Virus record (IMG/VR): IMGVR_UViG_3300035212_003113
Location: 186,001-250,000 of that record
Length of the DNA: 64,000 nt
Strand: one strand, 5' to 3'
Of the stretch, positions 19,377-49,045 are shown piece by piece. The notes under the pieces are model-generated. The model searched no databases and was not told the origin of the DNA. It saw only the letters and a program-made list of their open reading frames with translations. Position numbers and translations under genes: made by a program. The stretch's first letter is position 1; each line of letters opens with the position of its first letter.

Positions 19377-19793
19377 ATGATTTTTTCGCTTTTCAAACGC
19401 GCCAGCCCAGCGGTAGCAGCCGGAGCAGTCATAATAGCAAACAACACTGGCAGGATACTGCTACAACTACGCGCACCATACCTCAGTGCCGGCGGAAAAT
19501 GGAGCCTGGTTGGCGGCGGAGTCGAGCCCGGAGAATCACCAGAACGCGCCATGTTTCGCGAAATCGCCGAAGAAACAGGCGCCGCATTAGAAGGCAAACC
19601 TCAGTACCTGCACACGTATGAGAAAAAAGACTTCAAATATCACAGCTACCTGCTGCGCATTCCAGAAGAGTTCGAACCAGTAGGCAACCAGGAGTCTGCC
19701 GAGCACCGGTGGGTAGATATTGACGACCTGCCCGAACCGCTTCATCCCGGGATGAAGCCCCTAATACCCATAATCCTTCTCGCAATAAAATAA
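19377..19793 (+). CDS. Nudix hydrolase
   Basis: Nudix box GGVEPGESPERAMFREIAEETG; SD GGAG before ATG 19377. Confidence 0.92.
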   Translation: MIFSLFKRASPAVAAGAVIIANNTGRILLQLRAPYLSAGGKWSLVGGGVEPGESPERAMFREIAEETGAALEGKPQYLHTYEKKDFKYHSYLLRIPEEFEPVGNQESAEHRWVDIDDLPEPLHPGMKPLIPIILLAIK

Positions 19794-19820
19794 AACAGCC
19801 AGAAACCCGTCCGGCTTGCG

Positions 19821-19852
19821 GCCCGCAGATTGTTTGCGGGCTTCTTCTTTTT
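19821..19852 (+). terminator. Probable intrinsic terminator
   Basis: GCCCGCAGA-ttg-TTTGCGGGC-TTCTTCTTTT. Confidence 0.65.
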
Positions 19853-19985
19853 ACCTGCCAGCCAAAATATGCCAGACCGCCGGCTATAAAATGTAATTCA
19901 ATACGAGATAGGTTAAGATTTTTATTAGCAGTCGAGGTGATTTATTTCTAAGTCAAGCAATTCCCAGTATCTTTATCGCGAGGTC

Positions 19986-20378
19986 GTGGTCGACCCTGTT
20001 ATCCTTTCTACCGTTTATCTCAAAAACGCAACGTATAACATCAACGAAGTTGAGCTGATGGAAGAACTCAAAGAACTTCAGGATCGGCTGATTGCCAAGA
20101 TCAAAGAGGTCATTGATACGTGCTTGACCGAGAGGCAGCGCGAGGTGATGATACGGACGTATTTAGAGCAAAGAACGCAGATGGAAGTGGCAGACATGCT
20201 AGGGGTATGTCAGACGACTGTACATAAGATTATCTCTGGCAATATCGACTATTCCAACGGAGGGAGACGTTACGGCGGAGCGCTAAAGAAGATAAAGAAG
20301 ATCTGCGAAACTGATCAAGAAGTGGTGCAGATTCTCTCTCGTCTCGAGGAGATCAAGGGACTTCTGAGCGAAACCTAG
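19986..20378 (+). CDS. Stand-alone sigma70 region-4-like HTH protein
   Basis: LTERQREVM..TYLEQRTQMEVADMLGVCQTTVHK; start uncertain. Confidence 0.7.
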   Translation: MVDPVILSTVYLKNATYNINEVELMEELKELQDRLIAKIKEVIDTCLTERQREVMIRTYLEQRTQMEVADMLGVCQTTVHKIISGNIDYSNGGRRYGGALKKIKKICETDQEVVQILSRLEEIKGLLSET

Positions 20379-20493: not shown

Positions 20494-20497
20494 ATTT

Positions 20498-21326: not shown

Positions 21327-21330
21327 CAAT

Positions 21331-21672
21331 TCACTCTTCTACCGCAGCCAGCCCACGCAGTACACTATCAACTGCGTCTGCTTCGTTGGCCAATCCAGCT
21401 GCATCGAGCTCGTTCGCGACCTTTACGAGGCTAGTGAGCAGGTCGGCTTTACGAGCATTTAGGGCAAACTGAATCTGGCCTAATAGTTCTCGCTCGGCCT
21501 TTGTCAACTTCTTGTCGCCCTCTGCGCGCGCCTGGAGCTCCTTCTTTTTCTTTTTTAGAAGTGCGGTTGGGATCTTCTTGTCCGCAGGCACCTTGAGCTT
21601 TTTATGCAGCTCGCCCTTTTCCTCAAGATTAACGGCTCCCTGCATCCACTTGTTTTTTTTCTTAGCAGCCAC
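21331..21672 (-). CDS. Small Lys-rich basic protein with C-terminal shared helical module
   Basis: KWMQGAV...GELHKKLKVPADKKIP; SD GAGGTG; possible DNA-condensing core protein (inference). Confidence 0.75.
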   Translation of the reverse strand: MAAKKKNKWMQGAVNLEEKGELHKKLKVPADKKIPTALLKKKKKELQARAEGDKKLTKAERELLGQIQFALNARKADLLTSLVKVANELDAAGLANEADAVDSVLRGLAAVEE

Positions 21673-22630: not shown

Positions 22631-23110
22631 ATGAAGCTGGACATTGATTGGAATTCAATTGAGCAGGCGGTTCGGCCCTCAAAGCCTGCCACGCTGGACT
22701 TCTCAGCTGTTGGCAGCCAGTTTACAAAGGTAGCGTTTGACGTGTACAAGCGCACTGGCGAGGATTCGCTGTGGGAGCTTCGCGAGGCCGAGGACGGCCG
22801 CAAGATCCTGGTCGCTCTATATGAGGAATCAGAGGGCGAGACCGTTAAGACCGCATCTGCCTCTGAGTGGTCGGCACATGCCGACGCGTCGCGTCAATTT
22901 GTTACGCTAGCTTTCCAGGGCACTCCGGTCTACAAGTTCTCGTCCAAGGAGCACGGCTTTGATGAGGGCAGCGCAGCGCAGTTTGCTAACTACGTAGTTG
23001 CGCAGGCAAAGCAGCCCGACTTTATCGCAAAGATGGCATTCAGCCTTACCCCGGCTCGCCGGGCACACCTGCTAGGCATCGTCCGCAATCAGGGGAAAAC
23101 AAATGAGTGA
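22631..23110 (+). CDS. Hypothetical head-cluster protein
   Basis: SD GGAG before ATG 22631; TKVA, VKTA motifs. Confidence 0.75.
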   Translation: MKLDIDWNSIEQAVRPSKPATLDFSAVGSQFTKVAFDVYKRTGEDSLWELREAEDGRKILVALYEESEGETVKTASASEWSAHADASRQFVTLAFQGTPVYKFSSKEHGFDEGSAAQFANYVVAQAKQPDFIAKMAFSLTPARRAHLLGIVRNQGKTNE

Positions 23111-24602
23111 TATTAAGCACCAGCTTGATGCTTTTATTAAGGCTGCCTCTGCAGCGATTGTCGAAGACTCCAAAGATTATTTTATATCGGATGTACTCGG
23201 CCGCATTGAGACTGCCTATGGTCGTACAAAAGATGCCAGCCTGCATGCGCTTCACAACATCGTGAAGTCGCACAAGGACAGCGTAATCATCAGCCGCGCC
23301 GAACTGCGCAGCGGTTGGGAGCGCGTTGCTAGCCTTGGGCGTGCAGATGTGGTTCGCGACGAGATCGGCGACCTCCTGGGTGCCGCTGCTCCGGACACTG
23401 GTGTTGTGCGCAGCTCGGAAAAGACCGCAATGAATGCAGGTGGCGCTGCCATTGATATCTCGGTTGACGAGTCTGCCAAGTACGCAGCGCTATTTGGTGA
23501 GCACGTCGCCACCCGCTCTATCCGCAGTGGTGCCGATGCAGTGTCTGCCGAAATTCGCGACTATGGTCTTGACGCCAAGCTTACGCTGGCTGCCCAGGAT
23601 TCGCGCTTTGCTGTATTCGCAGCAGAGCTAAGCGATGGCAAGCGCACCGCCAGTGCACTGATTCCTGTTGAAGTAAAAAACGGCAACGTCCTGCTCCCGT
23701 CGGTATTCTTCGGCTCCACCTTTTCTGAATTTAATGCAGACAATCTCAACAAGTGGGCATCCGCTGGTGGTGCCGCATCGGTATCTGCCGTAGGCCTTCT
23801 GGATCATTTGAATAATCTTGCTGGTCCAGCGCTGGTCGAGGCCGGCAAGGCAGAGTGGGACGCCGGGATTGGCATTGCTGGCGGTACAGGCGTTGACCTT
23901 GGCCAGGCCGCTTCGCCTGTCCTAGCTAACGCAGAAGTTCCGGCCGAGCTCACTGCGGCTGCCCGTGATCTGGGTGGCACTGATTTCGAGCAGATCTTTA
24001 AAGAGGCTACTGTCAAGTGCGGCCAGGAGAAGCTTGCATCTGCTCGCCAGATGCTCGCCAATGAGCTGCGCTTTGCAAACGTTCGCCATGATAAGATTGT
24101 AGTCGACAGCGAGCTGGAGAACGGCATTCGCCTTGGCACGCATGTCCGCACGGCTGCTGGCAAACAGTACATAACCGTCCCAGTAGAATTTGATGGCAAG
24201 AGCGTACTGCTCCCCGGCTTCTTCCAGGCCGGCAACCGCGTACTTGAATTCTCGGATCACGCTCTGCACTCTGTTGCAGCAGATGGCGAGACGTCATTCC
24301 GGTCAATTGCAAGCAGCATGCGCACTGCTTCATTCTCTGACCTCTACAAAGTAGTCATCAAGAATGCTCAGTTTGGCAACCTAGCTGGTGCCGAAGAGGC
24401 GATGGCAGTTATCCTAGAAGAACATGGTGAAGAGCTCCATCGTCAGGCATTCCAGGATATGATCTCTGTCATTCAGAAGAGCGCCACCATGGAGCGTAAC
24501 GATTTCGACAAGTACGCAGCAGACCTGGCCGACGGCGGCAGCGAGACGGCTAATTATGTCTCTAACAAGGTAAACCTGGCCATGTTTGGCCTTCTGGATT
24601 GA
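23103..24602 (+). CDS. Hypothetical head-cluster protein with internal duplication
   Basis: IPVEVKNGNVLLPSVF vs VPVEFDGKSVLLPGFF. Confidence 0.8.
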   Translation: MSDIKHQLDAFIKAASAAIVEDSKDYFISDVLGRIETAYGRTKDASLHALHNIVKSHKDSVIISRAELRSGWERVASLGRADVVRDEIGDLLGAAAPDTGVVRSSEKTAMNAGGAAIDISVDESAKYAALFGEHVATRSIRSGADAVSAEIRDYGLDAKLTLAAQDSRFAVFAAELSDGKRTASALIPVEVKNGNVLLPSVFFGSTFSEFNADNLNKWASAGGAASVSAVGLLDHLNNLAGPALVEAGKAEWDAGIGIAGGTGVDLGQAASPVLANAEVPAELTAAARDLGGTDFEQIFKEATVKCGQEKLASARQMLANELRFANVRHDKIVVDSELENGIRLGTHVRTAAGKQYITVPVEFDGKSVLLPGFFQAGNRVLEFSDHALHSVAADGETSFRSIASSMRTASFSDLYKVVIKNAQFGNLAGAEEAMAVILEEHGEELHRQAFQDMISVIQKSATMERNDFDKYAADLADGGSETANYVSNKVNLAMFGLLD

Positions 24603-24604
24603 TT

Positions 24605-25129
24605 ATGCTTAAAATCGCAAGTATAGAAAAAGAAATCACAGAACTAGATGGTGCTGGTAGCGACGAGAAAACTCGTGCTGCCGCAGCTCTTGATTTTGCA
24701 GCATACGATACGGATGATCTGCGTCGCGTAGCTGCACTTGTAGTGGGCTTTGCCGATGCATTTGACGCAGACGGCCACAAGACTGCTGCAGATGCACTTG
24801 ATCGCGTTCTGAATAAGTTCGCTGCCTCGCCAGAAGCATTCTGGGATCCGCCAAAGCGCCGTCCTATGGACCTGGTGCCGCCAGTACGCTCTTCCCTGGG
24901 GGACATTGGACACAGTCTCAGTACGAGACACTCGCCCGATCTTCCTGGTGTCCAGCTCGTACGCGTTTCAGATGGCGTATACCGCGATCCAGTAACCAAC
25001 AAGACATATGACTTTCATCGTGGCTTTGTGCTGGATGACGGCACAAAATACGTCGGAGGCTCTGTATCGGCCCAGACGCCGGCCGGAAACGAGAAGTTTA
25101 GGCCACTGAAGCAGCAAATAGACTACTGA
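24605..25129 (+). CDS. Hypothetical head-cluster protein carrying the shared helical module
   Basis: MLKIAS N-terminus; FADAFDADGHKTAADALDRVL. Confidence 0.75.
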   Translation: MLKIASIEKEITELDGAGSDEKTRAAAALDFAAYDTDDLRRVAALVVGFADAFDADGHKTAADALDRVLNKFAASPEAFWDPPKRRPMDLVPPVRSSLGDIGHSLSTRHSPDLPGVQLVRVSDGVYRDPVTNKTYDFHRGFVLDDGTKYVGGSVSAQTPAGNEKFRPLKQQIDY

Positions 25130-25177: not shown

Positions 25178-25882
25178 ATGGCAACAAAAAACAAAGTACT
25201 GTCTCATATCGACCGAGATATAATTATCAAGATGCTTTCTGATGGCGAAAGTCCACAGAAAGTTGCCGAGTTTCTACAGACAAAGTATCCTGGGAAACAC
25301 AATGCACATCTAAATATTCATTGGCGAACAATCCACGACTTCCGTGATCGCTTCATGCCTTCTGGCAAACTAAGCAAAATTGCTATACAGGAGTCAGAGG
25401 TTCCGCGCTGGGCAAAAGAGAACGCGGATATAAAAGCCGAGCTAATGAAGAGCTCTGCGTACCAGAATGCAATAGCGAAGCTGGCCGAGGAAGAGATTAG
25501 CGTAAAAAAAGAATTGGTTCAGTTGCTTACTCTTGTCAAAGGCCGTATGGAGTTCTACTACAACGAGCTGGCAGTGAATAATAAGATGGATGAGCGCAAT
25601 GAGAAAGTGCTGCTAGAGCAGATGAAACTGCTGCTGTCCATACTCAGTCAACATGATAAAGCAGAGACGACGGCTGCTGCGGCTGCAACAGAAGTCAACG
25701 TTAGCATTAATATCGTAAAAGATCATGCACTTATAATAAGAGAAGCAGTGCGCGATACGCTAGACAGCGTAGACCCAAACCTCGCGATAGAGTTTATGGA
25801 GCGCCTTAATCTTAAAATGAAGGAGCTTGAGTATACGGAAACTACAGGTATTATTCCTATAGGCGGGAGAATAAATGTTTGA
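25178..25882 (+). CDS. Hypothetical protein, possible terminase small subunit
   Basis: N-terminal HTH-like segment, helical middle, VNVSINI strand; function is inference only. Confidence 0.4.
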   Translation: MATKNKVLSHIDRDIIIKMLSDGESPQKVAEFLQTKYPGKHNAHLNIHWRTIHDFRDRFMPSGKLSKIAIQESEVPRWAKENADIKAELMKSSAYQNAIAKLAEEEISVKKELVQLLTLVKGRMEFYYNELAVNNKMDERNEKVLLEQMKLLLSILSQHDKAETTAAAAATEVNVSINIVKDHALIIREAVRDTLDSVDPNLAIEFMERLNLKMKELEYTETTGIIPIGGRINV

Positions 25883-27233
25883 CTATTCCGATCCAAAGCT
25901 AGATGGCGAGATGCTCCAGATCCTGGAGCGTATAGCTGCGCGTGCAGCTGGCAGTGGCGTAAATCCAAATGACCTAGTAAAGTATCTTTTCTTAGAGAGG
26001 ATTGTACACGATGGACTGCGGCACATTGGACTGCATTTCTCCGATGCAGAACGAAGACCTCTGATTATGCACCTAATGCGGTGCGACGTGGATGATCTAA
26101 AAGGTATAGCAGATGAGATGGTCTCTGTGCTCAAGGGCATGAGTGATAAGAATATCACTTACAGCTTTAAGTTAGGAGACAGGATCAAGAAGGCTTATCC
26201 AGTACGGGTAGATACAGCTGTATATACGGGTATAAATAAAGATTTCCCGGGTCTGGCGTCGCGGGCCGCAAACTTAATATCTTCGGGCCTATTAGAACCA
26301 GACGCAATTCGTAGAACAATCTCTCACCTCCCAGTGAGCGACCGACTTGACTTCTTGACCTGGTATGGATTAAAGTACAAGTCAGGAAAAAATATTTCTT
26401 ACTTGGCTGCCCAGGAGGACGTCTTGATCAAAAAAGTTGCTAATGGGGACGATCAGTTTCCTAGCTATATCTACGAGTTTGAGCGCCGAAACAAGCCTGC
26501 TGCAGAGGTTCCGGTTTCGGTAAGCTTTGCAAAAGATTCTGACGCAGATCCAATGTCTGCCGCTGAGTTTAAAAAGATGCGGGAGAAGATGGTCGGCAGG
26601 ACATTTGCCATTGACAAACTTCTGGAGAAATACCGTCACCTTCTCAAGGAAGAGCAGTTTGATGCGGTAGAAGATAGCCTTAATGCGCTGCGCAAAAACA
26701 TCCGCAGACTAAAGGTTGCTACACTTAGTGACGCAATAGAAAAAACTGCATTCATGGCAGAGCAAAACGACTGGTTCGAGGGAGCAGATCTTATTCGCCG
26801 CCTGGCAGCTAGTGATGAGCAATTCGTAAAGATTGCAAATCTAATATCACGTCCAGAGGACTTGGGCAAGGTATTGAAGTCTCTTGATGAAATCTCCGGC
26901 TTCCTGCGTCAGCGCGCCATAATAAGAGAGCTGTCGGCGCGTGATATCGATATCTTTAATCTTGGATTTGGCCATATGCCCGAGATTGGCGACGCAGCGG
27001 CAAAGCTAATGGAGGCATTTAATGGCGCTGCAAATAAAATAGACGATCTTGTTAGCAAGCTTCGCGCAGAGCTCCAGCAGCAGACCGCTCCGAAGATGGC
27101 TCCGGAAGTGGTTAAAACGCTCGTCAAGCCCCAGGACCTGCCCCTTGTCAAGGCTCTTGAGCCAGGCGTCGCTCCTGCGCAACCAGAGCCATCTGGCGAA
27201 TTAGCTCCTCTGCCCAAGAAGCCTCTTCTATGA
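25875..27233 (+). CDS. Hypothetical head-cluster protein
   Basis: Several KxA motifs, one helical module, Pro-rich tail. Confidence 0.75.
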   Translation: MFDYSDPKLDGEMLQILERIAARAAGSGVNPNDLVKYLFLERIVHDGLRHIGLHFSDAERRPLIMHLMRCDVDDLKGIADEMVSVLKGMSDKNITYSFKLGDRIKKAYPVRVDTAVYTGINKDFPGLASRAANLISSGLLEPDAIRRTISHLPVSDRLDFLTWYGLKYKSGKNISYLAAQEDVLIKKVANGDDQFPSYIYEFERRNKPAAEVPVSVSFAKDSDADPMSAAEFKKMREKMVGRTFAIDKLLEKYRHLLKEEQFDAVEDSLNALRKNIRRLKVATLSDAIEKTAFMAEQNDWFEGADLIRRLAASDEQFVKIANLISRPEDLGKVLKSLDEISGFLRQRAIIRELSARDIDIFNLGFGHMPEIGDAAAKLMEAFNGAANKIDDLVSKLRAELQQQTAPKMAPEVVKTLVKPQDLPLVKALEPGVAPAQPEPSGELAPLPKKPLL

Positions 27234-28322: not shown

Positions 28323-28861
28323 AAAAGCTAGCGATTATCCGAACCCAGGACGGCGTGCACCGCTGTCCTTTTGGCCTAAGTATACAGACTGCCTGCAGGA
28401 ATGCGGGTAACTCCGTACTACGCATGGAAGCACTTGATAATGTCGAGGCGGATGATCGCGATCTGCAACTAGAGCACAATGTTGCCGCATATGCTTTGCA
28501 TGGGGCAGGGCGCTGCATATTTGCAGACAAGCTTGCGGAGAATGGCCGCGTAGTTCACTGTGACTATGGCGAGCCTGGCGCAGGCATGAGAGACTCCCCT
28601 ATGGATGCCATACAGGTGTATCCGCGAATGTTCGGCGCTATGGGTATTCACGGTTATTATAGCTATCCGCTGGCTAGCTACTGGGATAATCCTGGCAATG
28701 CCAATTTATTCGACGGCATCTATGGCTATGCATCCCAAGAAGAGCCTGGCCTTATAATTAATGCAGATTCTACGGAAAACACAGAATTAGATAGCGCTGA
28801 TGCGGAGAGGGTTTCTGCAGCGATTTCAGATCTAATTGGACACGGAGATGCAGATGAATGA
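28319..28861 (+). CDS. Hypothetical Cys-containing protein
   Basis: TTG start overlapping the upstream TGA with SD AGGTG gives MKKLAIIR. Confidence 0.7.
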   Translation: MKKLAIIRTQDGVHRCPFGLSIQTACRNAGNSVLRMEALDNVEADDRDLQLEHNVAAYALHGAGRCIFADKLAENGRVVHCDYGEPGAGMRDSPMDAIQVYPRMFGAMGIHGYYSYPLASYWDNPGNANLFDGIYGYASQEEPGLIINADSTENTELDSADAERVSAAISDLIGHGDADE

Positions 28862-30246: not shown

Positions 30247-30279
30247 AAGTCCGGCTTAAAATGCCGGATTTATGTTTTT
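30247..30279 (+). terminator. Hairpin/possible terminator before terL
   Basis: AAGTCCGGC-ttaaaat-GCCGGATTT followed by a T-rich tract. Confidence 0.5.
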
Positions 30280-30290
30280 GTGGAGCAAGC

Positions 30291-37748: not shown

Positions 37749-37885
37749 TAATTAAATACGGGACATCCGAGGCCGCCGAAGTAATCGATGCGAAGAATAT
37801 TCCTTCGTGGGTGACTCGCGATCCGCCGAAATCCGAGCAGGATGGCGTGACGGAGTCTGACGATAATACAGAGGAAAAAGAATGA
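37745..37885 (+). CDS. 46-aa micro-protein absent from the ORF track
   Basis: MIIKYGTSEAAEVIDAKNIPSWVTRDPPKSEQDGVTESDDNTEEKE; ATGA overlaps at both ends, SD AAGGA. Confidence 0.65.
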   Translation: MIIKYGTSEAAEVIDAKNIPSWVTRDPPKSEQDGVTESDDNTEEKE

Positions 37886-40800: not shown

Positions 40801-41691
40801 GCCGAGGAAGTCGAGGAGGCTATTGAAGAGCACGATGAGGAGGAGCACGGCGATCTAGACAAGGCCCTAGAGGACCTCCGCAAGGAGCTTGCCGAGCTCG
40901 AGGACAAGGTTGATGAGCTCGAGGAAGAGGTCGAGGAAGGCGAAGAGGACGAGGAGAAGGAGTCGGACGCTATGGACGACAAACTCGCCGCCCGCGCCGC
41001 AATGCGCCAGCAGCTCGTTGCTCGCGCCGCGAAGGCTGATATGGTCACCGCAGATCCGATGTTGAATATTCACGGCAAGGGCGAGGGCAAGCTCGACCTC
41101 GGCATGAATATCTCGGATGATGGCGATGTCGTTGAGAGCGTATTCGAGGTACAGCAGAAGGTCATGAATACTCTTGGCGAGAAAGTCAAGAAGGCCGCTG
41201 CCGGTATCGCTGAGGCCGTCCGCAAGGGCGTCCTGAAGGATTCGCAGCTCGATGTACTCGTTGCTACCGCTGCAGTCGATGCAGAGGCCGTTAAGTACTA
41301 CCGCGATTACTTCGCCGGCGCCGATGCCGACTTCGCCAAGGGCCTTGTTGCAGAGTTCAAGAAGTCTGCTTCCGCCACAGAGGACGTTGGCTTCCGTTAC
41401 AAGCGCGCATACGCAGTAGCAATCGATGCACAGGCTCGCAACCTAATTGGCACCGGCCGCGCCGCTCTTGATGAGTGCGCCGACACGCTGGCCAACGGCA
41501 GCGACGCGAACTTCGATAGCTTCAAGCGCATGGTTGGCAGTGTCAAGACCTCTGTCCGTACGGCCGGTGTCGTACCCCAGATGGGCGTCGTTGATGGCGG
41601 CGAAGCCACGAATACGCGCACGGCCTCGGACAATGGTTCCGTTGATGTACGCGATTGGCGCAGCCTAGGCAAAGCGCTGTTCGATATCTGA
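37882..41691 (+). CDS. Prohead maturation protease fused to scaffold/core protein
   Basis: NNNGDIF, GKPLCKDH (His), VSMG (Ser), CxxC...CxH, ELSIV..GAD as in HK97/assemblin-fold proteases; long charged coiled-coil C-terminus. Confidence 0.8.
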   Translation: MSIVKHAFIDGVSIGILDNNKLNDDPGVQARFAAVTNKLRDEQKKRGSKELSPYVDDFLYASCIMMHAAEAALVNQETGEPIKTAAGKSAAGWFEKYDIDGGKETARWVSPDGIRPVKNNNGDIFPESELLKAYKNWVGKPLCKDHVSSSVDGIRGVIVDTYYDPKFKRVHALFALDKKNYPDLARKVEAGYATNVSMGTAVGRSICSECQNVATVASEFCSHVKSRTHYGEINFDLNPIELSIVVTGADPRAKIRKIVASLDEYRAQAEELRKVKGAPLEELDQISANIKAAAAVAEEIDVKPVLSDIISIMETSEPGSGAFGDATDKLVALLSEEGNAEAVYSNIKDDRPLVDSLLNALRRAKAQDLVEKLNSLRIQNVSVPSMQSTDTTKTVGSVDGALSNLNTSIKPSSTLGDIELENQVSAFAPGTRDMSGLQQFAALYTDGVATKDGQLLEKAANDLAGRITSIKNSLDSLKSCLPTQKAGVGTGDIMTFDELRKRANLRKKAYMQGTEEPKSYPAMGNPDLRDGDHHLHGEELDTSVANPDQKTKEMLLRASLNERRTARAEKLKAIAEMAVVVKDQSGNPAGAIVNKKFVPKAMADDGHDADDADHAEDGDHAADAELKKAEAALVQRLEMLKEAAKKKAKKPVKEEEEDKPAKGGKDAKKAKPTKGDDKMDKMKKKAYPQGTAEPESYKPMGDPDLRDGDHHLGGKELDTKAGNPDQKVKELIQRAGLKARLTKSANVANSRWAVLAGDKEVFSVTAGDAYNVHLNKQSDVAGKTWGDLFVSPAYGKQLMAQIRAGKISKLAEELDAAKQSVDAPAADAAPAPAAAPAPAPMVDVVPEAKGDDDMKDKLMAALEKLEECMQNLKDIVMGSDKGVDNVDVDTMAATASLDRGMFEAHAELASLASELSFLAKEANLSVPSVRLAARAAIRDGHLAAIEANERIAEYADACDGGMYVLDEEELEEVAEEVEEAIEEHDEEEHGDLDKALEDLRKELAELEDKVDELEEEVEEGEEDEEKESDAMDDKLAARAAMRQQLVARAAKADMVTADPMLNIHGKGEGKLDLGMNISDDGDVVESVFEVQQKVMNTLGEKVKKAAAGIAEAVRKGVLKDSQLDVLVATAAVDAEAVKYYRDYFAGADADFAKGLVAEFKKSASATEDVGFRYKRAYAVAIDAQARNLIGTGRAALDECADTLANGSDANFDSFKRMVGSVKTSVRTAGVVPQMGVVDGGEATNTRTASDNGSVDVRDWRSLGKALFDI
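39361..41691 (+). CDS. Predicted nested in-frame scaffold protein (776 aa) from internal ATG
   Basis: AGGAG at 39351-39355, CTATTAA at 39287, apparent codon-usage shift downstream. Confidence 0.6.
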   Translation: MTFDELRKRANLRKKAYMQGTEEPKSYPAMGNPDLRDGDHHLHGEELDTSVANPDQKTKEMLLRASLNERRTARAEKLKAIAEMAVVVKDQSGNPAGAIVNKKFVPKAMADDGHDADDADHAEDGDHAADAELKKAEAALVQRLEMLKEAAKKKAKKPVKEEEEDKPAKGGKDAKKAKPTKGDDKMDKMKKKAYPQGTAEPESYKPMGDPDLRDGDHHLGGKELDTKAGNPDQKVKELIQRAGLKARLTKSANVANSRWAVLAGDKEVFSVTAGDAYNVHLNKQSDVAGKTWGDLFVSPAYGKQLMAQIRAGKISKLAEELDAAKQSVDAPAADAAPAPAAAPAPAPMVDVVPEAKGDDDMKDKLMAALEKLEECMQNLKDIVMGSDKGVDNVDVDTMAATASLDRGMFEAHAELASLASELSFLAKEANLSVPSVRLAARAAIRDGHLAAIEANERIAEYADACDGGMYVLDEEELEEVAEEVEEAIEEHDEEEHGDLDKALEDLRKELAELEDKVDELEEEVEEGEEDEEKESDAMDDKLAARAAMRQQLVARAAKADMVTADPMLNIHGKGEGKLDLGMNISDDGDVVESVFEVQQKVMNTLGEKVKKAAAGIAEAVRKGVLKDSQLDVLVATAAVDAEAVKYYRDYFAGADADFAKGLVAEFKKSASATEDVGFRYKRAYAVAIDAQARNLIGTGRAALDECADTLANGSDANFDSFKRMVGSVKTSVRTAGVVPQMGVVDGGEATNTRTASDNGSVDVRDWRSLGKALFDI
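39394..40092 (+). repeat. Two copies of a 56-aa repeat (39394-39561, 39925-40092)
   Basis: KKAY.QGT.EP.SY..MG.PDLRDGDHHL.G.ELDT...NPDQK.KE...RA.L, 38/56 identical by hand. Confidence 0.9.
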
Positions 41692-41841: not shown

Positions 41842-41985
41842 ATGTTTGACTTAGACCGGCTTGAGATGCAGTCAGAAATGCAAGAGCTGAAAGAGTTGGG
41901 CCTAGATCCGGAGGAAATACGAGGATATATATGTTTTTTCTGGGTAGATTCTGAAGAAAGTGAGGTAGGAAATGTCATCAATTGA
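41842..41985 (+). CDS. 47-aa acidic micro-protein absent from the ORF track
   Basis: MFDLDRLEMQSEMQELKELGLDPEEIRGYICFFWVDSEESEVGNVIN; SD GAGG. Confidence 0.55.
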   Translation: MFDLDRLEMQSEMQELKELGLDPEEIRGYICFFWVDSEESEVGNVIN

Positions 41986-42178
41986 TATCGCAGATGAGAT
42001 CGCAAAGGGAATGCAGGATGCCTTGACAGAGAATGCTCCCAAGATCGAAGGGCACTTTTCAGGCGTTGCTAACCAGCTGGCCAATACTGCCAATGCGTTA
42101 GATGCTGCCGGTAGCCCGTTGGCTGCACGAGTAGACTCGCTGCTTGGTCAGATGGTCAGTGTACTAGGAGAGGACTGA
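41972..42178 (+). CDS. Small protein consisting largely of the shared helical module
   Basis: LANTANALDAAGSPLAARVDSLL; SD GAGG/AGGA. Confidence 0.7.
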   Translation: MSSIDIADEIAKGMQDALTENAPKIEGHFSGVANQLANTANALDAAGSPLAARVDSLLGQMVSVLGED

Positions 42179-42892: not shown

Positions 42893-43477
42893 ATGAAAAA
42901 AGATCTTTCATCGTTTGCGCGTATGTTCGAGGCGGATTCCGGCATGGATCGCCGCGACCCATTTGTTTCTGCGTGGTCAGATGCGCTCATGCAGAGCAAT
43001 TCACAGCGCAATCGCAAGTTTATTGCTACTGACGTAGACAACTGGCTGAATACCATGATGAAAGAGGCGGCGGGCGCCGATGACTCTGCCACGGTAGATG
43101 TTTGGCTTGATGGCAGCAATGACCTATTCTGCGTATCGCTAACGGATACGTCAGGCTGCTCAGAGTTCTGTGTAGCTCCGCCACGCAGTCCTAAAACGGA
43201 CAAAGAGCGCCTCATTCTTTCTGTAATCAACGGCGGACAGGATGCTTACGACGCTCTGCGCAAGACCGTTATGAAATTCAAAGCTGGCGATGCGCCAGCA
43301 GTGACTGAGTCGGACAAGCGCGAAGCAGAGATCGTCGAAGAAGAGATGTCCGATGACCAAATAGATGAGATCTCTGGTAAACTAGATAAGGCTGCTTCCC
43401 TAGTTGCTAATAATCAAGCTGCAGCATACATGATCGAATTAGCAGCCTCTCGCATCAGAGAGCTTAAGAACGGGTGA
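42893..43477 (+). CDS. Hypothetical protein
   Basis: SD GAGGAG; MMKEA. Confidence 0.7.
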   Translation: MKKDLSSFARMFEADSGMDRRDPFVSAWSDALMQSNSQRNRKFIATDVDNWLNTMMKEAAGADDSATVDVWLDGSNDLFCVSLTDTSGCSEFCVAPPRSPKTDKERLILSVINGGQDAYDALRKTVMKFKAGDAPAVTESDKREAEIVEEEMSDDQIDEISGKLDKAASLVANNQAAAYMIELAASRIRELKNG

Positions 43478-43482
43478 AAAAT

Positions 43483-43872
43483 ATGTCTAAGTTTGTTGAT
43501 GTAGACGGCATTCTTGCCGAGGTTCAGAAGAAGATGGCCGGCCAGTCGACCATGCCGAAGAGCGTCTTCAAGCAGGACGCCGCTCGTGAAGACGTTGATG
43601 TTCAGAGCGAGCTAAACAAGCGCGCCGAGGCCTACTTCAGTAAGATCCTTGACGAAGCTCACCCGAAGTCAGTAAAGCTCGAGGGCATCGACGCAACGGT
43701 AATGACTCTAGAGGATCGCCATGCTGCGGCCATGGAGACCTTGAGCGACGCAAAGCGCAAGAAGCTTGCGGCCGTTGCTATGCAGCTAGTTCATGTTGCG
43801 AATCAGGCTGAAAAAGATGGCCTAACAAAGCAGGCCGCTGATCTTCGTATTGCTGCTCGCAAGCTAGTTTGA
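43483..43872 (+). CDS. Hypothetical internal protein with AHP motif and helical module
   Basis: ILDEAHPK; LVHVANQAEKDGLTKQAADL. Confidence 0.75.
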   Translation: MSKFVDVDGILAEVQKKMAGQSTMPKSVFKQDAAREDVDVQSELNKRAEAYFSKILDEAHPKSVKLEGIDATVMTLEDRHAAAMETLSDAKRKKLAAVAMQLVHVANQAEKDGLTKQAADLRIAARKLV

Positions 43873-44828: not shown

Positions 44829-45995
44829 ATGGCAAAATTCAGCACAAGTAACATTCCTCGTCCTGACGCAGCCAGCGGCACCGGAGGTCGTGCATCTGGC
44901 GGTTCGGGCAAGCCAGCCAAGACGGTTAAGCAGGACTGGGTCACGTCTCTGCAGAATAAGCTAGTGGAGCAATCCAAGAAGCTAAATGCGCCAATTGACC
45001 TTGGTCCTACTGGCGTCGATGGCGTTTATGGCAAAAAGACGCGCGGAGCCGTAGAGGTAGTCGCCAAGGCTCTAAAAATAGAGAATCCTCTTGATGCGAA
45101 TGGCCGTCCGACAAAGGAATTTAATGATAAAGTTGGACTGGGTGACAATGTCGCTGCACCAGGGACTCCTACTGCACCAGGGACTCCTGCTGCACCAGGA
45201 TCACCAGATGCGCCGGAAAAAGAAGGCGAGGCGGTTCAATTTCTCAATGATGTCGATGTAGATGGCAAGAACATAAGCATAGGTGTTCTTGAGGCCGGAC
45301 TTCCGACGACAATGACCAAAACATTAGATGCCGGAGGGCAAGAGCTTCCGCTGTCTCCAGCCGAGGCACTGTCTAGGTTTAAGATGATAAGAGACGCAAT
45401 GCTTGCCGCTGGATTTTCTGTTTCATCCGAAATGCCTAATGTTCGCAGTCTTTCGAGTTCATCAGACTATGCTCGTGCATCGGAACAACTTGAGACCGTC
45501 TGGAAAGAACTGACTTCTCATCTGGAGAGTCTTGAAAAGGCTATAGTTGCAAAAATTACAGAAAAGCGAAAGGCAATGGGTCTGTCTGCCGGCTCTACTC
45601 AGAGAGCATACAAGGCTGAGAGGAGTACGTCTCTTTTTCCGAAAGCAATAAATGCGGGGCTGATTACGGCGTACAAATGGCTAAGCGGATATCTTAAAGA
45701 GATGGAGAAGGGCGACGAGACCAACCCCCGGCCGCTTTTAGAGGTAATGAAGCGGAACACGGGCGTCGCAGTCGACCGAAACTATCCGCATGACATGTGG
45801 AACGACGAACAGGCTCGTAAGGTGGGCCAGATACTGCGATCAGCCGGAGGCTGGCTTGGAGAGAGGATTGTTCCAGCAGACACCTCTCAGTACTACAAAG
45901 GGCCGTATAGAGACGACATTGTAGATAAGGAATGGACGAATGCTTTCAAAGAGAACAGCAATGAAATCTGGAAAATAATTAGAGGCCAGAAATGA
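44829..45995 (+). CDS. Protein with PG_binding_1-like peptidoglycan-binding domain
   Basis: VTSLQNKL...DLGPTGVDGVYGKKTRGAV; APGTP linker repeats. Confidence 0.65.
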   Translation: MAKFSTSNIPRPDAASGTGGRASGGSGKPAKTVKQDWVTSLQNKLVEQSKKLNAPIDLGPTGVDGVYGKKTRGAVEVVAKALKIENPLDANGRPTKEFNDKVGLGDNVAAPGTPTAPGTPAAPGSPDAPEKEGEAVQFLNDVDVDGKNISIGVLEAGLPTTMTKTLDAGGQELPLSPAEALSRFKMIRDAMLAAGFSVSSEMPNVRSLSSSSDYARASEQLETVWKELTSHLESLEKAIVAKITEKRKAMGLSAGSTQRAYKAERSTSLFPKAINAGLITAYKWLSGYLKEMEKGDETNPRPLLEVMKRNTGVAVDRNYPHDMWNDEQARKVGQILRSAGGWLGERIVPADTSQYYKGPYRDDIVDKEWTNAFKENSNEIWKIIRGQK

Positions 45996-47209
45996 GCGTA
46001 GTCAAAGACATCTTCAAGGCATACAAGGCATCCGGCTATCGCGATGTTGAATTTGACAGCATGTTGAGCTCGGCCAAGGGTGCGCTCGGCCTCTCTGAGG
46101 ACGAGGTCATAGGTATGCTTGCCGAGGCGTGGGACAGCGGTGCTCTCAAAAACCTAGAGTCGTATGCTTCGTTCGCTCCGCCGGTTGAGTCAGGCGAGAT
46201 GCTTCTTTTTAAAAAAGCAAATCCTGGGACTCCCGAATTCGACTATGTAGAGGCGCTACTCGACTCTCTTGATAGTGCGGTTGCGGCAAAAAATGCGCAA
46301 GATGTGCAGGATCTGACAAAGAAAATTGATGCAGTCGCGAAATCAAGTAACACTGAATATAAAAAGGCGCTATTTGATATAATAGAGAGCAAGAGATCGC
46401 CAACAGAGACAATTGATGACATGCCCATAATGAGGGGCATAAGTGGCGCTAGCGGGGACACATTTGATTCGATTAAAGCGATTCATGAATACGGCACTAC
46501 GAGAGGCTTTGCCGTGCCAGGCGCTGCATCGGCATATGTTCCGCGCCTAGGTTCTGTTAACGAGGTCGCCGATATAGCGAAAGAATTAAAAAAACCATCG
46601 CCAGATCCGAGGGCAATAGAAAGATTTAAAAACATATCCGAGGCGAAGGTTGGTCTCTGGGGCAAAGATGCCGATGCTGCCAGGCAACTGGCTAGGGACT
46701 TTAATGAAAATGAGATGCGCGGCCTGTTAAGTAAATTGGGACTGCCCCCTGATCAAGAGATGAAGCTCCTCAATAACTTTTTGGAGAATAAGGGCTCAAG
46801 AATGACCAAGCTCTTGGAAAGAGAGAAGGGGGTTCTCGGGGCCCTTACCAAAATATTTTCCAAGAACAAAGGGGTAAGTGCTCTCGAAAAGTTTAAGGCT
46901 GGCGGCACGCTTTTGGGCGCTCCTGCACGAGCATTTTTGTGGATGCCAAAAATGTTATGGAAGCTCAAGGGTTTTCCTGTGTTAGGCCCGATTGCAGGCA
47001 TTTTAGCTGGCCTGGGTCAGACTGCGGCCGCTGGATACATTGGTCTTAAGACATTTTTTGGCGACGATGACAAGCCAGACGTATCTGCGCCTGTTGAAGC
47101 ACCCGCTGGCAATGGCTCTGTACCCGGATCAATCGCAGATCCTGCTCTCGCTGGCAACTTGCATCAAAAGATGCGCACAATTCTAAAAAGGACCTTTGGT
47201 CCCCGCTGA
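45992..47209 (+). CDS. Hypothetical protein with C-terminal hydrophobic Gly-rich segments
   Basis: GFPVLGPIAGILAGLGQTAAAGYIGL; LFKKA. Confidence 0.7.
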   Translation: MSVVKDIFKAYKASGYRDVEFDSMLSSAKGALGLSEDEVIGMLAEAWDSGALKNLESYASFAPPVESGEMLLFKKANPGTPEFDYVEALLDSLDSAVAAKNAQDVQDLTKKIDAVAKSSNTEYKKALFDIIESKRSPTETIDDMPIMRGISGASGDTFDSIKAIHEYGTTRGFAVPGAASAYVPRLGSVNEVADIAKELKKPSPDPRAIERFKNISEAKVGLWGKDADAARQLARDFNENEMRGLLSKLGLPPDQEMKLLNNFLENKGSRMTKLLEREKGVLGALTKIFSKNKGVSALEKFKAGGTLLGAPARAFLWMPKMLWKLKGFPVLGPIAGILAGLGQTAAAGYIGLKTFFGDDDKPDVSAPVEAPAGNGSVPGSIADPALAGNLHQKMRTILKRTFGPR

Positions 47210-47236
47210 ACAGATTCGGTAAAATAGGAGTACGCT

Positions 47237-49045
47237 ATGTCTATCGCTGACAATATAGAAAAAGAATTTGCCAGACTGCTTCGCGAGTCCAGATCTGTTG
47301 CGCGCCATAAGCTAGTTGCCCAGGCCGCCGACAAGGAAGACGCCATAAGAGCCAAGCGCCCTCGCAAAGAGAAGAACAAGAAGAGCGTCATCGAAGAAGC
47401 TCATCCGGGCGAAGTGTTTGTTGCCGAGTCTGACGGGCTTGGTGGCCTAGCCGGAAACCCAGAGCAGGTACAACAGCAGATACTCGACGCACTGAATCGC
47501 CGTCCTTCTGCTTTTCCATATCAGGGCCTTGTGGCAAATGCCATGGCTGACTTTGAGAAGACCGCAGAAGTGCTCGAATCACACAATCTATTTAGCGAGG
47601 CCGCAGCAATCCGCAAGGTTGCCGCGGAGTGGCTATCGGTGTTAGAAAGGCGAGGGGGCTTAAAAAAAAAGGCATCAGATGGGGTTCCGGATCAAGTGAT
47701 CTCTCCTAGCGGAGAGGTGATAGAAGATTTTATCAATGTCCCTAGTGCTCGTCCAAATGCGCCCGGATCGGCAAAGACGCCTCCTTCTGCTTCTCCTCCC
47801 CCATCCGGAGCGTTCATCCCTGATGCAGAAGAGGTCCGCGGCGGTGCGGCAGCAGCTTCAGCCGAAGGGAAGGCGGCTACTCGTGTTGTTGGTCCAGTAC
47901 CAGTAGATCCATCTGCGGCCGTGGCAGATGCAAAAAAAGCTGCAGATGCTACACAGCCTCTTGCCGATGCTGGAAAAGCTGCCGCAAAGGCAAAAGGCTT
48001 CTTCTCAAAGGCACTGAAATATCTTGGCGTGGCTGGCGATGCGGCCATGATCGGCTCGTATGCCCTTGACAAGGATTGGACATCTGTAATAGGTACTGTT
48101 GGCGCGGGCGGTGTGGCCGCAGCTGCTGCCGCATTGAGTGCACCGTTGGCCGCAGCTGCAGGAGGAGTAACAGCAGCAGCAGGAATAGGCATAGGCATAT
48201 ACAGCTTGATCAATGAGACTATTCTCGGAGCTTGGCAAGAGGATCTAGAAACGGACATAAATGATGCCATTGGGGCTGTCCAGTCAGTTCTAGATGATAA
48301 TGACACGGATACTGCCCAGAGGTCTGCAGCCCAGACCATGATGAATGAGCTGCAAGCTATTGTCAAAAATATATCCGTTTTGCGCCAGGAGGCTAAGAAA
48401 GGTGAGCGGGCAAACATGAACGCAGTGGCCCAAGGGATGTCTGATATCGAAGATTCTGTGCGCGCGGCTCGCATAGCGGCAGATGATCTAAAAGGTGCGA
48501 CCGTATTTGATCTTGGGGTGCGAAAAGTCATCGCCACTCTTGATGATATAGAAGAGTCTAATCAGGAGTTCAACGAAGAACTGCAGAGCAAGGTAGATCC
48601 ATCAATGTCCAAACTTACGGATGCCATTAAGCAGATTTCTGCTGCGGCAGCAGCGAGAAAGGGCATAATAGGAGAGCTTAATATAAATGTGGGCGGCTCT
48701 TCGCCAGGCTCCTCATCATCCTCTTCGTCTCAAGGCTCTCCAGCTGTCTCCACGGATGATCCTGCTCATATCAAAGAAGTGCAGGCTGCAATAAACGACC
48801 TGCAGGCCGCAGACGCAGGATTCAGCCCAAGGCTTGCTCTAACTGGAAAGTGGGATCCGCCGACAGAAAAGGCGCTTGAGTCCTACGTTCAGCTTTGGTT
48901 AGAAGTCGACCCAGGTCTTGTCCAGGTTATAAGTGTTGAAAGCCTTAAGGACGCTGAGGGCAGCGTTATACGCGCCATGAATCGCGACTATCGCAATAAA
49001 GAGGAAGTAATCGCCTCTATCATGAGAGCTTCGACTAATAAATAG
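47237..49045 (+). CDS. Putative ejection/internal protein with hydrophobic hairpin and C-terminal PG-binding-like domain
   Basis: AHP motif, helical module, LKKKAS, long Ala/Gly hydrophobic stretch, IKEVQAAIN...LTGKWDPPTEKAL. Confidence 0.6.
   Translation: MSIADNIEKEFARLLRESRSVARHKLVAQAADKEDAIRAKRPRKEKNKKSVIEEAHPGEVFVAESDGLGGLAGNPEQVQQQILDALNRRPSAFPYQGLVANAMADFEKTAEVLESHNLFSEAAAIRKVAAEWLSVLERRGGLKKKASDGVPDQVISPSGEVIEDFINVPSARPNAPGSAKTPPSASPPPSGAFIPDAEEVRGGAAAASAEGKAATRVVGPVPVDPSAAVADAKKAADATQPLADAGKAAAKAKGFFSKALKYLGVAGDAAMIGSYALDKDWTSVIGTVGAGGVAAAAAALSAPLAAAAGGVTAAAGIGIGIYSLINETILGAWQEDLETDINDAIGAVQSVLDDNDTDTAQRSAAQTMMNELQAIVKNISVLRQEAKKGERANMNAVAQGMSDIEDSVRAARIAADDLKGATVFDLGVRKVIATLDDIEESNQEFNEELQSKVDPSMSKLTDAIKQISAAAAARKGIIGELNINVGGSSPGSSSSSSSQGSPAVSTDDPAHIKEVQAAINDLQAADAGFSPRLALTGKWDPPTEKALESYVQLWLEVDPGLVQVISVESLKDAEGSVIRAMNRDYRNKEEVIASIMRASTNK

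Follow-up and report, generated by a model that had tools for sequence, protein, structure and literature searches.

The stretch analysed here (the window) comprises 64,000 nucleotides of a 372-kb phage genome, positions 186,001 to 250,000 of the IMG/VR record IMGVR_UViG_3300035212_003113. Its 19.3-49.1 kb part encodes a head-assembly module in which a five-residue pattern, hydrophobic-x-Lys-x-Ala ([ILVFM]xKxA), recurs near N-termini and at domain borders. The features are listed below by window position, with motif residues numbered P5 to P1 (P1 being Ala) and the residue following the motif given after a hyphen.

19338-19793, + strand: Nudix hydrolase (PHROG 1198, E 6e-26, match from residue 24), with LFKRA-S at residues 18-22 directly before the Nudix domain, seen in this sequence alone.
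21331-21672, - strand: 113-aa ORF ending in a two-helix module; its LVKVA lies in helix 1 of the module.
23103-24602, + strand: 499-aa ORF with 6 motifs vs 1.0 expected; four of the six are kept in all aligned relatives of middle distance (5/5 or 6/6), FIKAA in 1 of 1 and LNKWA in 0 of 4.
24599-25129, + strand: ORF with MLKIA at residue 3 and a two-helix module (residues 43-79) ending in LNKFA-AS before the conserved C-terminal part; orthologues have 45 motifs vs 6.2 expected.
25875-27233, + strand: 452-aa ORF with 3 motifs; orthologues have 58 vs 19.4 expected.
28836-29720, + strand: ORF with FKKEA-S (29439-29453, residues 202-206) at the border between a variable N-terminal part and a conserved C-terminal part of ~90 aa.
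29729-30226, + strand: ORF with tandem sites MTKEA-S and MRKSA-A (residues 50-60), both kept in 8 of 8 relatives while P4 and P2 vary (LTKQA; LKKQA, LRKQA, LQKHA).
30261-32150, + strand: large terminase (PHROG 675, E 3e-60; Pfam GpA_ATPase), motif-free in the window (0 vs 1.1 expected).
32159-34000, + strand: portal protein (PHROG 16240, E 2e-49).
32372-32386, + strand: portal site LRKTA-V (residues 72-76), kept in close relatives (8 of 8) but in 0 of 47 distant ones.
32444-32458, + strand: portal site LIKTA-A (residues 96-100), just before the conserved core, kept in 30 of 50 distant alignments.
35602-36495, + strand: ORF with MEKRA (43-47) and a two-helix module (177-212) ending in LHKKA-DS; relatives keep P5, P3 and P1 while P4 and P2 vary (LMKSA, LTKRA, LVKTA, LIKSA).
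37882-41691, + strand: 1269-aa protease-scaffold-like fusion protein (PHROG 18299 'head maturation protease', E 7e-14, and phrog_2774), with 11 motif hits vs 3.7 expected; orthologues of 1038-1306 aa occur in related loci.
38029-38706, + strand: protease domain of this protein (residues 50-275), with invariant Asp145-His146 and Ser197-Met198-Gly199 and a CxxC...CxH insert (Cys207, Cys210, Cys221, His223).
39394-40092, + strand: two copies of an internal ~55-aa repeat of this protein (residues 505-560 and 682-737), each starting with a motif (LRKKA, MKKKA) kept in relatives of middle distance (8 of 9 and 9 of 9).
41972-42178, + strand: 68-aa ORF ending in the two-helix module (residues 32-64).
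42893-43872, + strand: two small ORFs (42893-43477 and 43474-43872) with conserved sites LDKAA-S, LNKRA-E and LTKQA-A, kept in 8 of 8 relatives of middle distance.
47237-49045, + strand: 602-aa ORF with three sites in residues 106-146 (FEKTA, IRKVA, LKKKA); FEKTA is kept in 5 of 5 distant relatives and IRKVA in 3 of 5.
52615-53619, + strand: major capsid protein (PHROG 2522, E 8e-63), outside the range of the preliminary description; residues 22-26 read LVRIA-K where most relatives have L-V-K-Y-A followed by A or S.

Enrichment of the motif in the head module

The motif had been noticed by eye in a preliminary description of positions 19377-49045, and this observation is confirmed. Every pentapeptide listed there is present at or near its given place, although TKKSA at 37188 does not fit the strict pattern because P5 is Thr, and MKKLA at 28319 becomes LKKLA if the longer TTG ORF is used. 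To investigate whether the motif exceeds what composition alone would produce, a check already proposed in that description, we called ORFs with our own greedy procedure and compared observed counts with those expected from within-protein shuffles. Region 19300-49100 contained 55 motifs against 21.1 expected (z 6.8; Poisson 9.6e-10; about 3e-7 after correcting for 358 patterns), whereas the rest of the genome gave 136 vs 122 and the window outside the region 11 vs 10.4. Roughly 21 of the 55 hits, about a third to 40%, are expected by chance, so individual sites are not established. Among 358 h.X.Y patterns (h, hydrophobic) h.K.A ranked first in the region, compared with 80 of 400 elsewhere. 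The control patterns were not enriched, with A.K.h at 20 vs 22.6, h.R.A at 16 vs 13.4, h.E.A at 22 vs 18.2 and h.K.S at 12 vs 13.6; a G variant was likewise flat, and shifted registers gave ratios of 0.67-1.51. In 15-kb bins along the genome, the two clearly enriched bins lay at 195-225 kb (p 0.0017 and 2.4e-06), while 225-240 kb (p 0.032) and 150-165 kb (p 0.046) were marginal.

The excess survived removal of the 1269-aa protein (44 vs 17.6) and of four further hits linked to the two-helix module (40 vs 17.6), and the motif-bearing proteins are not paralogues of one another. Codon usage for Lys and Ala inside the motif equals the background, which indicates that the motif acts at the protein level. 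A motif lies in the first 30 residues of 9 of 31 region proteins against 32 of 450 elsewhere (Fisher 5e-4), and motif density in the first 30 residues is 11.3 vs 3.9 per 1000 aa. The preliminary claim that the motif is often followed by S, A, G or D is only partly right, as the residue after Ala in the window is S 11, A 10, N 9, F 5, E 5, D 2 and G 1 times, and Q and S dominate in relatives. Val is under-used at P5 in the window (2 of 55).

Conservation and placement of the motif, and the protease domain

To investigate whether the excess is a special feature of this phage, we examined 32 related metagenomic loci (portal about 45% identical, GC 0.34-0.45). All of them showed a 1.6- to 5-fold excess, and the pooled non-redundant proteins gave 589 vs 183. 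In a blind screen of 7839 exact a.b.c triples, L.K.A ranked 1, I.K.A 2, M.K.A 4 and F.K.A 9. The signal extends to Bacillus phage G, where gp1-gp28 contain 26 vs 9.7, the top pattern there, and the protease gp19 contains 7 vs 0.7, flanking the catalytic core. All 132 representative protease-scaffold fusions carry an excess (median 10 vs 2.9). In the cluster C mycobacteriophage Catera, in contrast, the signal is weak.

We then asked where the motif falls relative to conserved domains. In ORF 28836 it occupies the same column in 27 of 29 orthologues, with conservation of 0.20 before the site and 0.54 after it. In the portal it occupies the same alignment columns in 26 of 33 orthologues, with G for A in some, and lies about 15 residues before the core in the window. 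Among 33 portal orthologues the part before the conserved core has 46 motifs vs 3.6 expected and the core 7 vs 17.2. An alignment of 25 major capsid proteins gave 20 vs 3.5 in the N-terminal part and 0 vs 5.7 in the core. Terminase is likewise depleted (5 vs 26.4 in 33 orthologues, P 4e-7). These orthologue counts are not phylogenetically independent. P5, P3 and P1 are kept while P4 and P2 vary, and motif Lys and Ala are more conserved than other Lys and Ala (0.58 vs 0.47 and 0.64 vs 0.44), which indicates that selection acts on the motif itself. The i, i+2, i+4 spacing, with Pro near zero at P4 and P2, fits strand-like binding.

Some listed examples look like chance. MKKVA of the CCA-like enzyme is not kept (0 of 6 middle-distance and 0 of 28 distant relatives), and portal LRKTA is restricted to close relatives.

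The 37882 product begins with a domain of the T4 gp21 / herpes assemblin fold. The AF2 model of the domain (pLDDT 92) retrieved T4 gp21 (5JBL, prob 0.99) and then herpesvirus proteases as top Foldseek hits, and VIA-align gave Z 10.4 to gp21 (128 residues at 2.4 A) and 9.4 to pseudorabies pUL26N. His146 and Ser197, the latter being the SMG serine highlighted in the preliminary description, are invariant in the family alignments. An hhalign comparison, with weak statistics, placed them on a His and on Ser140 of gp21. Sequence similarity to gp21 was undetectable, as neither a Pfam S77 nor a PDB sequence match was found.

A 36-residue two-helix module that ends in the motif recurs in 14 proteins. 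It is N-terminal in many of them, but also occurs internally and at C-termini.

A predicted cleavage signal for head maturation

Altogether, we consider that [LIMF]-x-K-x-A, usually followed by S, A, N, Q or T, is most likely the recognition signal of the capsid-maturation protease of this phage and its many uncultured relatives, the protease being the gp21/assemblin-fold serine protease at the N-terminus of the 1269-aa protein (probability about 0.65). We found this specificity described in no paper. The analysis itself establishes the enrichment, its restriction to the head module, its conservation and placement, its depletion in the parts presumed mature, and the protease fold with its invariant His and Ser; that cutting happens, which enzyme performs it, which bond is cut and any targeting role are inferred. 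The interpretation in the preliminary description, namely that the 37882 protease cuts after K-x-A, with a specificity closer to Ala-specific assemblin, and so releases cargo from helical tags, is partly supported. The motif lies where propeptide cuts are expected, at N-termini, just before the conserved portal core and capsid protein body, flanking the protease domain and about ten times in the scaffold-like tail, and the two-helix module fits the 'helical tag' idea. However, the Nudix and CCA-like enzymes remain only putative cargo. A cut after Lys, with the hydrophobic residue at P3 as in the L/I-x-E of T4, fits equally well, although we favour a cut after Ala (about 60:40).

Several findings weigh against this reading. 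The cleavage reading is well supported but indirect, with no direct evidence of cleavage; no mature termini exist for this phage or any relative, and we found no paper reporting such sites. The phage's own capsid protein has Arg at P3, and h.R.A is not enriched in the region. Motifs occur inside the folded protease core of relatives (22 vs 5.2), and some conserved motifs are followed by Pro (LKKVA-P before the protease core), which most serine proteases cannot cut. In addition, predicted scaffold pieces of up to 184 residues, plus a 453-residue piece holding the protease, are large for leaving a capsid. The weak signal in Catera, the lack of phylogenetic independence of the orthologue counts and the presence of a ClpP gene elsewhere in the genome also count against it.

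Among the alternatives, all of which we regard as unlikely, the least unlikely is that the motif is a docking or capsid-targeting signal, bound by the scaffold, the portal or the inactive protease, which brings proteins into the procapsid without being a scissile site or with the cut made elsewhere. The motif sits at the end of a conserved module that is often N-terminal, it is kept even where it starts at residue 1 (M-x-K-x-A in 18 of 346 proteins), where removing five residues seems pointless, and its avoidance in terminase could equally prevent mis-packaging. On the other hand, about ten copies along the scaffold-like tail in every family member suit fragmentation better than docking, sites flank the protease core as autoprocessing sites do in T4 and phiKZ-type enzymes, and placement just before conserved mature domains is the classic propeptide pattern. 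In T4, targeting peptides end in the cleavage motif, so the two roles are not exclusive.

Less likely still, the motif may be cut by another protease, such as a phage ClpP homologue (genome 170941-171435, E 2e-32), an M23-like protein at 34420 (a hit below Pfam's threshold) or a host enzyme. Phage G also encodes ClpP/ClpX, reported in virion proteomics. However, ClpP has no such sequence specificity and its gene lies 15 kb outside the enriched region, M23 enzymes cut peptidoglycan cross-links, and the enrichment follows the gp21-like protease gene in every locus and is strongest in its own polypeptide. It is also improbable that the motif marks lysines for a modification or cross-link (acylation, methylation, isopeptide bond) made during head assembly. 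The invariant Lys in a fixed neighbourhood resembles short modification consensus sites such as psi-K-x-E, but no candidate modifying enzyme was seen in the head module, Arg replaces Lys at the capsid-protein site in this phage, and the variable-to-conserved transition, the N-terminal bias and the flanking of the protease core are not expected for a modification site. Finally, a by-product of Lys/Ala-rich helical scaffolding proteins or of one copied module is largely refuted, for although the region is Lys-rich (7.8% vs 4.4%) with helical, low-complexity stretches, and two to four hits come from the repeated module, the within-protein expectations, the flat controls, the lack of paralogy, a spacing that does not lie on one helix face, and the depletion in terminase and mature cores, which cannot come from composition, all speak against it.

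The T4 gp21 protease, the best structural match, likewise acts at a short motif, (L/I)-x-E (PMC9026906, PMC10052503), shared by many head proteins mostly near N-termini, and also cuts up the scaffold and itself; a hydrophobic residue lies two places before a charged one in both. Here, however, the charged residue is Lys, a fixed Ala follows two places later, and the protease is fused to a roughly 1000-aa scaffold-like tail and carries a Cys/His insert. In the giant phages phiKZ (gp175) and SPN3US (gp245), one protease trims many head and ejection proteins at (S/A/G)-x-E, leaving N-terminal propeptides, and multiple motifs occur within propeptides (PMC10052503). That motif ends in Glu, those sites were mapped by mass spectrometry whereas ours are only predicted, and no sequence relationship was detectable. 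Herpesvirus assemblin (UL26 family) shares the fold (pseudorabies, KSHV, HCMV, HSV-1 and EBV proteases at Z 7.4-9.4), is fused to the N-terminus of a scaffold protein and releases itself. It cuts (V/L/I)-x-A-S between Ala and Ser, so that, if the cut here is after Ala, both would share P1 Ala and a small polar P1', although here Lys occupies P3 and the hydrophobic residue P5, and host and virus realm are entirely different. Phage G is the nearest cultured relative (capsid protein gp27 45%, protease domain of gp19 42%, portal gp14 29% identity). Its protease is a separate 300-aa protein, its capsid protein lacks the ~45-residue N-terminal extension, and the 36-residue module was not found in its first 50 kb. 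The capsid-targeting sequences of T4 internal proteins are short N-terminal peptides that end in the protease motif and are removed after packaging. The two-helix module is comparable, but it is longer (about 36 aa), is predicted to form two helices, is not confined to N-termini, and is unrelated in sequence.

In the course of events that we infer, the protease would be built into the procapsid as part of its own scaffold-like protein and, once active, would bind exposed stretches carrying the motif as an extended strand, with the side chains at P5, P3 and P1 facing the enzyme and P4 and P2 free but unable to be Pro. It would trim the N-termini of the portal, of the capsid protein (in most relatives) and of a dozen or so accessory head proteins, free itself from the scaffold part and cut that part into pieces of about 40-180 residues. 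In several proteins the site closes the two-helix module, which may serve as the tag bringing them into the head.

Organization of the head module and over-representation of the motif

The analyzed DNA (bases 186001-250000) belongs to a 371,675-bp virus record with direct terminal repeats, which is rated complete. Sequence family searches placed the following features in and around its head module, with terminase, portal, protease fusion and capsid protein following each other in an order that is also seen in related loci:

19338, Nudix hydrolase, among unannotated ORFs upstream of the terminase
27230, CCA-like nucleotidyltransferase, among the same ORFs
30261-32150, large terminase
32159-34000, portal protein
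34420-35586 and 44829-45995, two ORFs with weak, sub-threshold hits to cell-wall hydrolase families (Peptidase_M23, E 9e-4; endolysin PHROG, E 2e-4), neither of which carries the motif
37882-41691, 1269-aa protein whose N-terminal part matches 'head maturation protease' families, continued by a scaffold-like part
52615-53619, major capsid protein
54087-54941, thymidylate synthase (PHROG 160, E 1e-87), just downstream of the capsid protein gene among structural-looking ORFs

Pfam and PHROG searches gave nothing for most accessory ORFs, and the ESM Atlas gave nothing for ORF 28836. The nearest cultured relative is Bacillus phage G (capsid protein 45%, protease domain 42% and portal 29% identity), which also has lysin genes inside its head module, followed by the cluster C mycobacteriophages. 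A comparison at the DNA level found nothing similar in the phage collection.

A preliminary description of the sequence had proposed that the pattern hydrophobic-x-K-x-A pervades the head proteins, and had named its composition-corrected enrichment as a test of this idea. To investigate whether this is the case, we called genes by a simple longest-ORF rule and counted [ILVFM]xKxA, taking expectations from shuffles of each protein or from its own composition. The region at 19300-49100 contains 55 hits against 21 expected (z 6.8), whereas the rest of the genome has 136 against 122 and the rest of the window 11 against 10.4. Among all 358 patterns of the form hydrophobic-x-X-x-Y, the K/A pattern ranks first in the region (p 1e-9) and 80th elsewhere. 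Along the genome, the two 15-kb bins from 195 to 225 kb are clearly enriched (p 0.0017 and 2.4e-06), whereas the 225-240 kb bin (p 0.032) and the 150-165 kb bin (p 0.046) are marginal.

Head-module proteins are much richer in Lys (7.8% vs 4.4%) and poorer in Cys, Thr and Ser than the rest of the proteome. We also performed a series of controls. The reversed pattern, Arg or Glu in place of Lys, Ser or Gly in place of Ala, and shifted spacings are not enriched. The excess survives removal of the 1269-aa protein (44 vs 17.6) and of the hits explained by a repeated module (40 vs 17.6), and no paralogy was found among the motif-bearing proteins at E 1e-3. Codon usage for the Lys and Ala of the motif equals the background, so the signal is in the protein and not in the DNA. 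The observation made in the preliminary description therefore held, and all of its examples are present. About 40% of the individual hits in the window are nevertheless expected by chance, and some of the listed examples (MKKVA of the CCA-like enzyme, portal LRKTA) are not conserved. The statement that the motif is often followed by S/A/G/D should read S/A/N, with Q/S in relatives, and Val is disfavored at the first position in the window.

To assess whether the excess extends to relatives, we searched IMG/VR with the portal, which gave 298 related loci. IMG samples that yielded close relatives include 3300043465 and 3300032235. In each of the 32 divergent loci long enough to test (portal about 45% identical, GC 0.34-0.45), the motif is 1.6-5 times over expectation, and pooled over 347 non-redundant proteins it occurs 589 times against 183. 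In a blind screen of 7839 exact a.b.c triples, L.K.A, I.K.A, M.K.A and F.K.A rank 1, 2, 4 and 9. Loci found through the capsid protein give 320 vs 118 upstream of that gene and 81 vs 42 downstream. Phage G gp1-gp28 show the same top pattern (26 vs 9.7), with seven hits in the 300-aa protease gp19, on both sides of its core. Copies of the motif in phage G include MAKQA (residue 20) in portal gp14, and LVKTA, LEKVA and LLKIA in gp19. In contrast, the cluster C mycobacteriophage Catera shows only a weak h.[KR].A excess (24 vs 12.7), shifted towards Arg, so that the reach of the motif beyond the phage G-like group remains uncertain on present evidence. A profile of the protease domain found 2561 protein clusters in a 1.84-billion-protein library, 216 of them at E 1e-30 or better, and all 132 long representatives among the best 150 carry the motif in excess (median 10, expected 2.9; total 1294 vs 388). 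Some family members of 1400-1665 aa (P0014, P0019, P0066, P0086, P0134 and others from this profile search) carry the protease domain at about residues 470-680, which means an extra N-terminal extension of ~470 residues ahead of the protease.

Placement of the motif and the predicted head protease

In ORF 28836 the motif occupies one alignment column in 27 of 29 orthologues, between a gap-rich variable N-terminal part and a conserved C-terminal part of ~90 residues. In the portal it sits about 15-30 residues before the conserved core in 26 of 33 sequences (about 15 in the window); the part before the core holds 46 motifs against 3.6 expected and the core 7 against 17.2. The capsid protein of most relatives has L-V-K-Y-A followed by A or S at residues 22-26, whereas the window (52678-52692) and its closest kin read L-V-R-I-A-K there, and the capsid protein of Catera has L-G-R-F-A-K at residues 11-15; either Arg is tolerated at this one site or the cut that we infer has been lost in this sub-lineage. 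Capsid N-terminal parts hold 20 motifs vs 3.5 expected, and the cores 0 vs 5.7. In the protease fusion the motif is enriched before the catalytic core (26 vs 3.1) and along the C-terminal ~900 residues (152 vs 32). The large terminase is strongly depleted across 33 orthologues (5 vs 26.4 expected) while ordinary non-head proteins of the genome are not (ratio 1.1), suggesting selection against accidental recognition even in a protein that works outside the shell.

Motif density in the first 30 residues of head-module proteins is three times that elsewhere, and in the genome of the window 9 of 31 region proteins have a motif there against 32 of 450 others. At individual sites relatives keep P5, P3 and P1 while P4 and P2 change; for example, LHKKA becomes LMKSA, LTKRA, LVKTA or LIKSA. 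The Lys and Ala of the motif are more conserved than other Lys and Ala in the same alignments. Pro is almost absent and Gly rare at the two free positions, where beta-branched residues are favored, which together with the i, i+2, i+4 spacing fits a peptide bound as an extended strand. Pro depletion is strongest at P4 and P2 and only about 0.5x after Ala, and some conserved motifs are followed by Pro.

We then proceeded to examine the protein at 37882. Residues ~57-260 are conserved across the family, and Asp145-His146, Ser197-Met198-Gly199 and a Cys207/Cys210/Cys221/His223 cluster are invariant, with His146 and Ser197 unchanged in alignments of 17 and of 64 sequences. PHROG 18299 'head maturation protease' matches the protein (E 7e-14). 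No match to Pfam or to a solved structure was found with either the single sequence or the profile, no Pfam match was found for 17 relatives, and no Peptidase_S78 match was found in the genome; a search for Peptidase_S77 matched nothing, although its controls matched nothing either. A first AlphaFold2 model based on 17 sequences was poor (pLDDT 61), whereas a 64-sequence model (pLDDT 92) gave three T4 gp21 chains as the top Foldseek hits (prob 0.99), followed by the EBV, pseudorabies, HSV-1 and HCMV proteases. VIA-align gave Z 10.4 to gp21 over 128 residues at 2.4 A and Z 7.4-9.4 to herpesvirus proteases, with 9.4 to pUL26N. The domain is thus predicted to have the fold of the gp21 / HK97 gp4 / herpes assemblin capsid-maturation serine proteases. 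A profile-sequence alignment with hhalign places His146 and Ser197 on the His of gp21 'LNH' and on Ser140, reportedly the catalytic residues of gp21 (5JBL); this alignment is statistically weak alone (E 0.017) but agrees with the fold match. The invariant CxxC...CxH cluster (window 38500-38551, residues 207-223) is probably a small zinc-binding insert just after the predicted catalytic Ser, and gp21 has no match for it in the hhalign alignment, which stops at Ser197.

The rest of the protein is helical and low-complexity and ends in a conserved C-terminal part. It includes a duplicated unit of ~55 residues (window 39394-39561 and 39925-40092), containing ...QGT.EP.SY..MG.PDLRDGDHHL.G.ELDT...NPDQK.KE..., each copy of which starts right after a motif. 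Cutting at every strict motif would give pieces of 6-184 residues plus a 453-residue piece containing the protease domain.

A recurrent two-helix module

A module of 36 residues, with two predicted helices around a D-x-x-G turn and a consensus near x-L-x-x-I-A-x-E-L-D-x-x-G-x-x-x-x-A-D-x-I-D-x-V-L-x-K-x-A, occurs in 14 proteins of this genome. It is mostly N-terminal, with eight copies at N-termini of ORFs far from the head module, and four copies lie inside the window. The locations recorded are as follows.

Window 21331-21672 (-), module-bearing ORF
Window 24599-25129, module at residues 43-79
Window 35602-36495, module at residues 177-212
Window 41972-42178, module at residues 32-64
Genome 14625-15332, module-bearing ORF
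Genome 19503-20234, module-bearing ORF
Genome 24783-25058 (-), module-bearing ORF
Genome 25286-26689, module-bearing ORF
Genome 61508-61888 (-), module-bearing ORF
Genome 64865-65695, module-bearing ORF
Genome 77052-77747, module-bearing ORF
Genome 100746-101519, module-bearing ORF
Genome 265859-267142, module-bearing ORF

In relatives the module recurs in 38 loci and usually ends in the h-x-K-x-A motif. No Pfam or PHROG family matched it, and it was not found in the first 50 kb of phage G. Its helix 1 explains two to four of the 55 hits in the window. The module may be what the preliminary description called a helical tag, and may be a capsid-targeting or docking tag.

Interpretation of the motif as a putative cleavage signal

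The simplest account of these observations is that the motif is the signal read by the head protease, as L/I-x-E is for T4 gp21 and S/A/G-x-E for phiKZ-type enzymes (PMC10052503), and we give this reading a probability of about 0.65. It would cover the restriction to the head module, the strand-like pattern, the conserved borders of putative propeptides, the flanking of the protease core, the many copies in the scaffold part, and the avoidance in mature cores and terminase. Whereas the enrichment, the placement of the motif and the match of the modeled domain to gp21 come from the analysis itself, that any site is cut, and that this domain is proteolytically active on head proteins, is inferred. 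A literature search, which did not cover González et al. 2020 on phage G, found no description of this motif and no paper reporting processing sites in phage G or in cluster C mycobacteriophages. The interpretation offered in the preliminary description, in which the 37882 protease cuts after K-x-A with a specificity closer to herpes assemblin and releases cargo from helical tags, is only partly supported.

Two readings of the bond are compatible with the sequence statistics. A cut after Ala gives a hydrophobic P5, P3 Lys, P1 Ala and a small polar P1', recalling the A|S of herpes assemblin, and the residue after Ala is mostly S, A or N in the window and Q or S in relatives. A cut after Lys gives a hydrophobic P3 as in T4, P1 Lys and P2' Ala. 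We lean slightly to the first.

Among rival explanations, the motif may be a docking signal without cleavage. It may also be read by another protease, as the phage encodes a ClpP-family protein (PF00574, E 2e-32) and phage G likewise has ClpP/ClpX, reported in its virion proteome; however, the only ClpP match lies at genome 170941-171435, 15 kb before the window and outside both the head module and the enriched region. A lysine modification site is a further alternative, and an artefact of composition or helical structure is largely excluded by the controls.

A short-motif code read by a gp21/assemblin-fold protease is already known, whereas this specificity, its spread through the phage G-like huge phages, the avoidance in terminase and the associated module appear undescribed in the literature searched. 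It is tempting to speculate, although this wider reading is tentative, that a whole clade of huge phages, including phage G and at least ~200 protein clusters of protease-scaffold fusions, carries a previously undescribed maturation code in which a gp21/assemblin-fold protease reads hydrophobic(P5)-x-Lys(P3)-x-Ala(P1), the first Lys/Ala-directed specificity for a phage prohead protease. The code would be coupled to the portable two-helix tag ending in the site, which would deliver a set of otherwise unrelated proteins, possibly including enzymes such as the Nudix hydrolase, into the capsid, where the tag is then removed. If so, the packaged and processed proteome of uncultured megaphages could be predicted from sequence alone.

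Capsid-maturation proteases with mapped motifs are few, namely those of T4, phiKZ/SPN3US and the herpesviruses, and all the known phage motifs end in Glu. A Lys/Ala-based code, shared by hundreds of uncultured huge-phage lineages and by phage G, which is in culture and for which virion LC-MS/MS data sets exist (preprint 10.1101/2024.12.16.628780; González et al. 2020), would show how specificity has drifted within one ancient fold. It would also give a sequence-only way to predict mature ends and propeptides, and perhaps which proteins are packaged, for phages that cannot be grown. The terminase depletion and the two-helix module are new leads on how such large heads avoid self-damage and recruit cargo.
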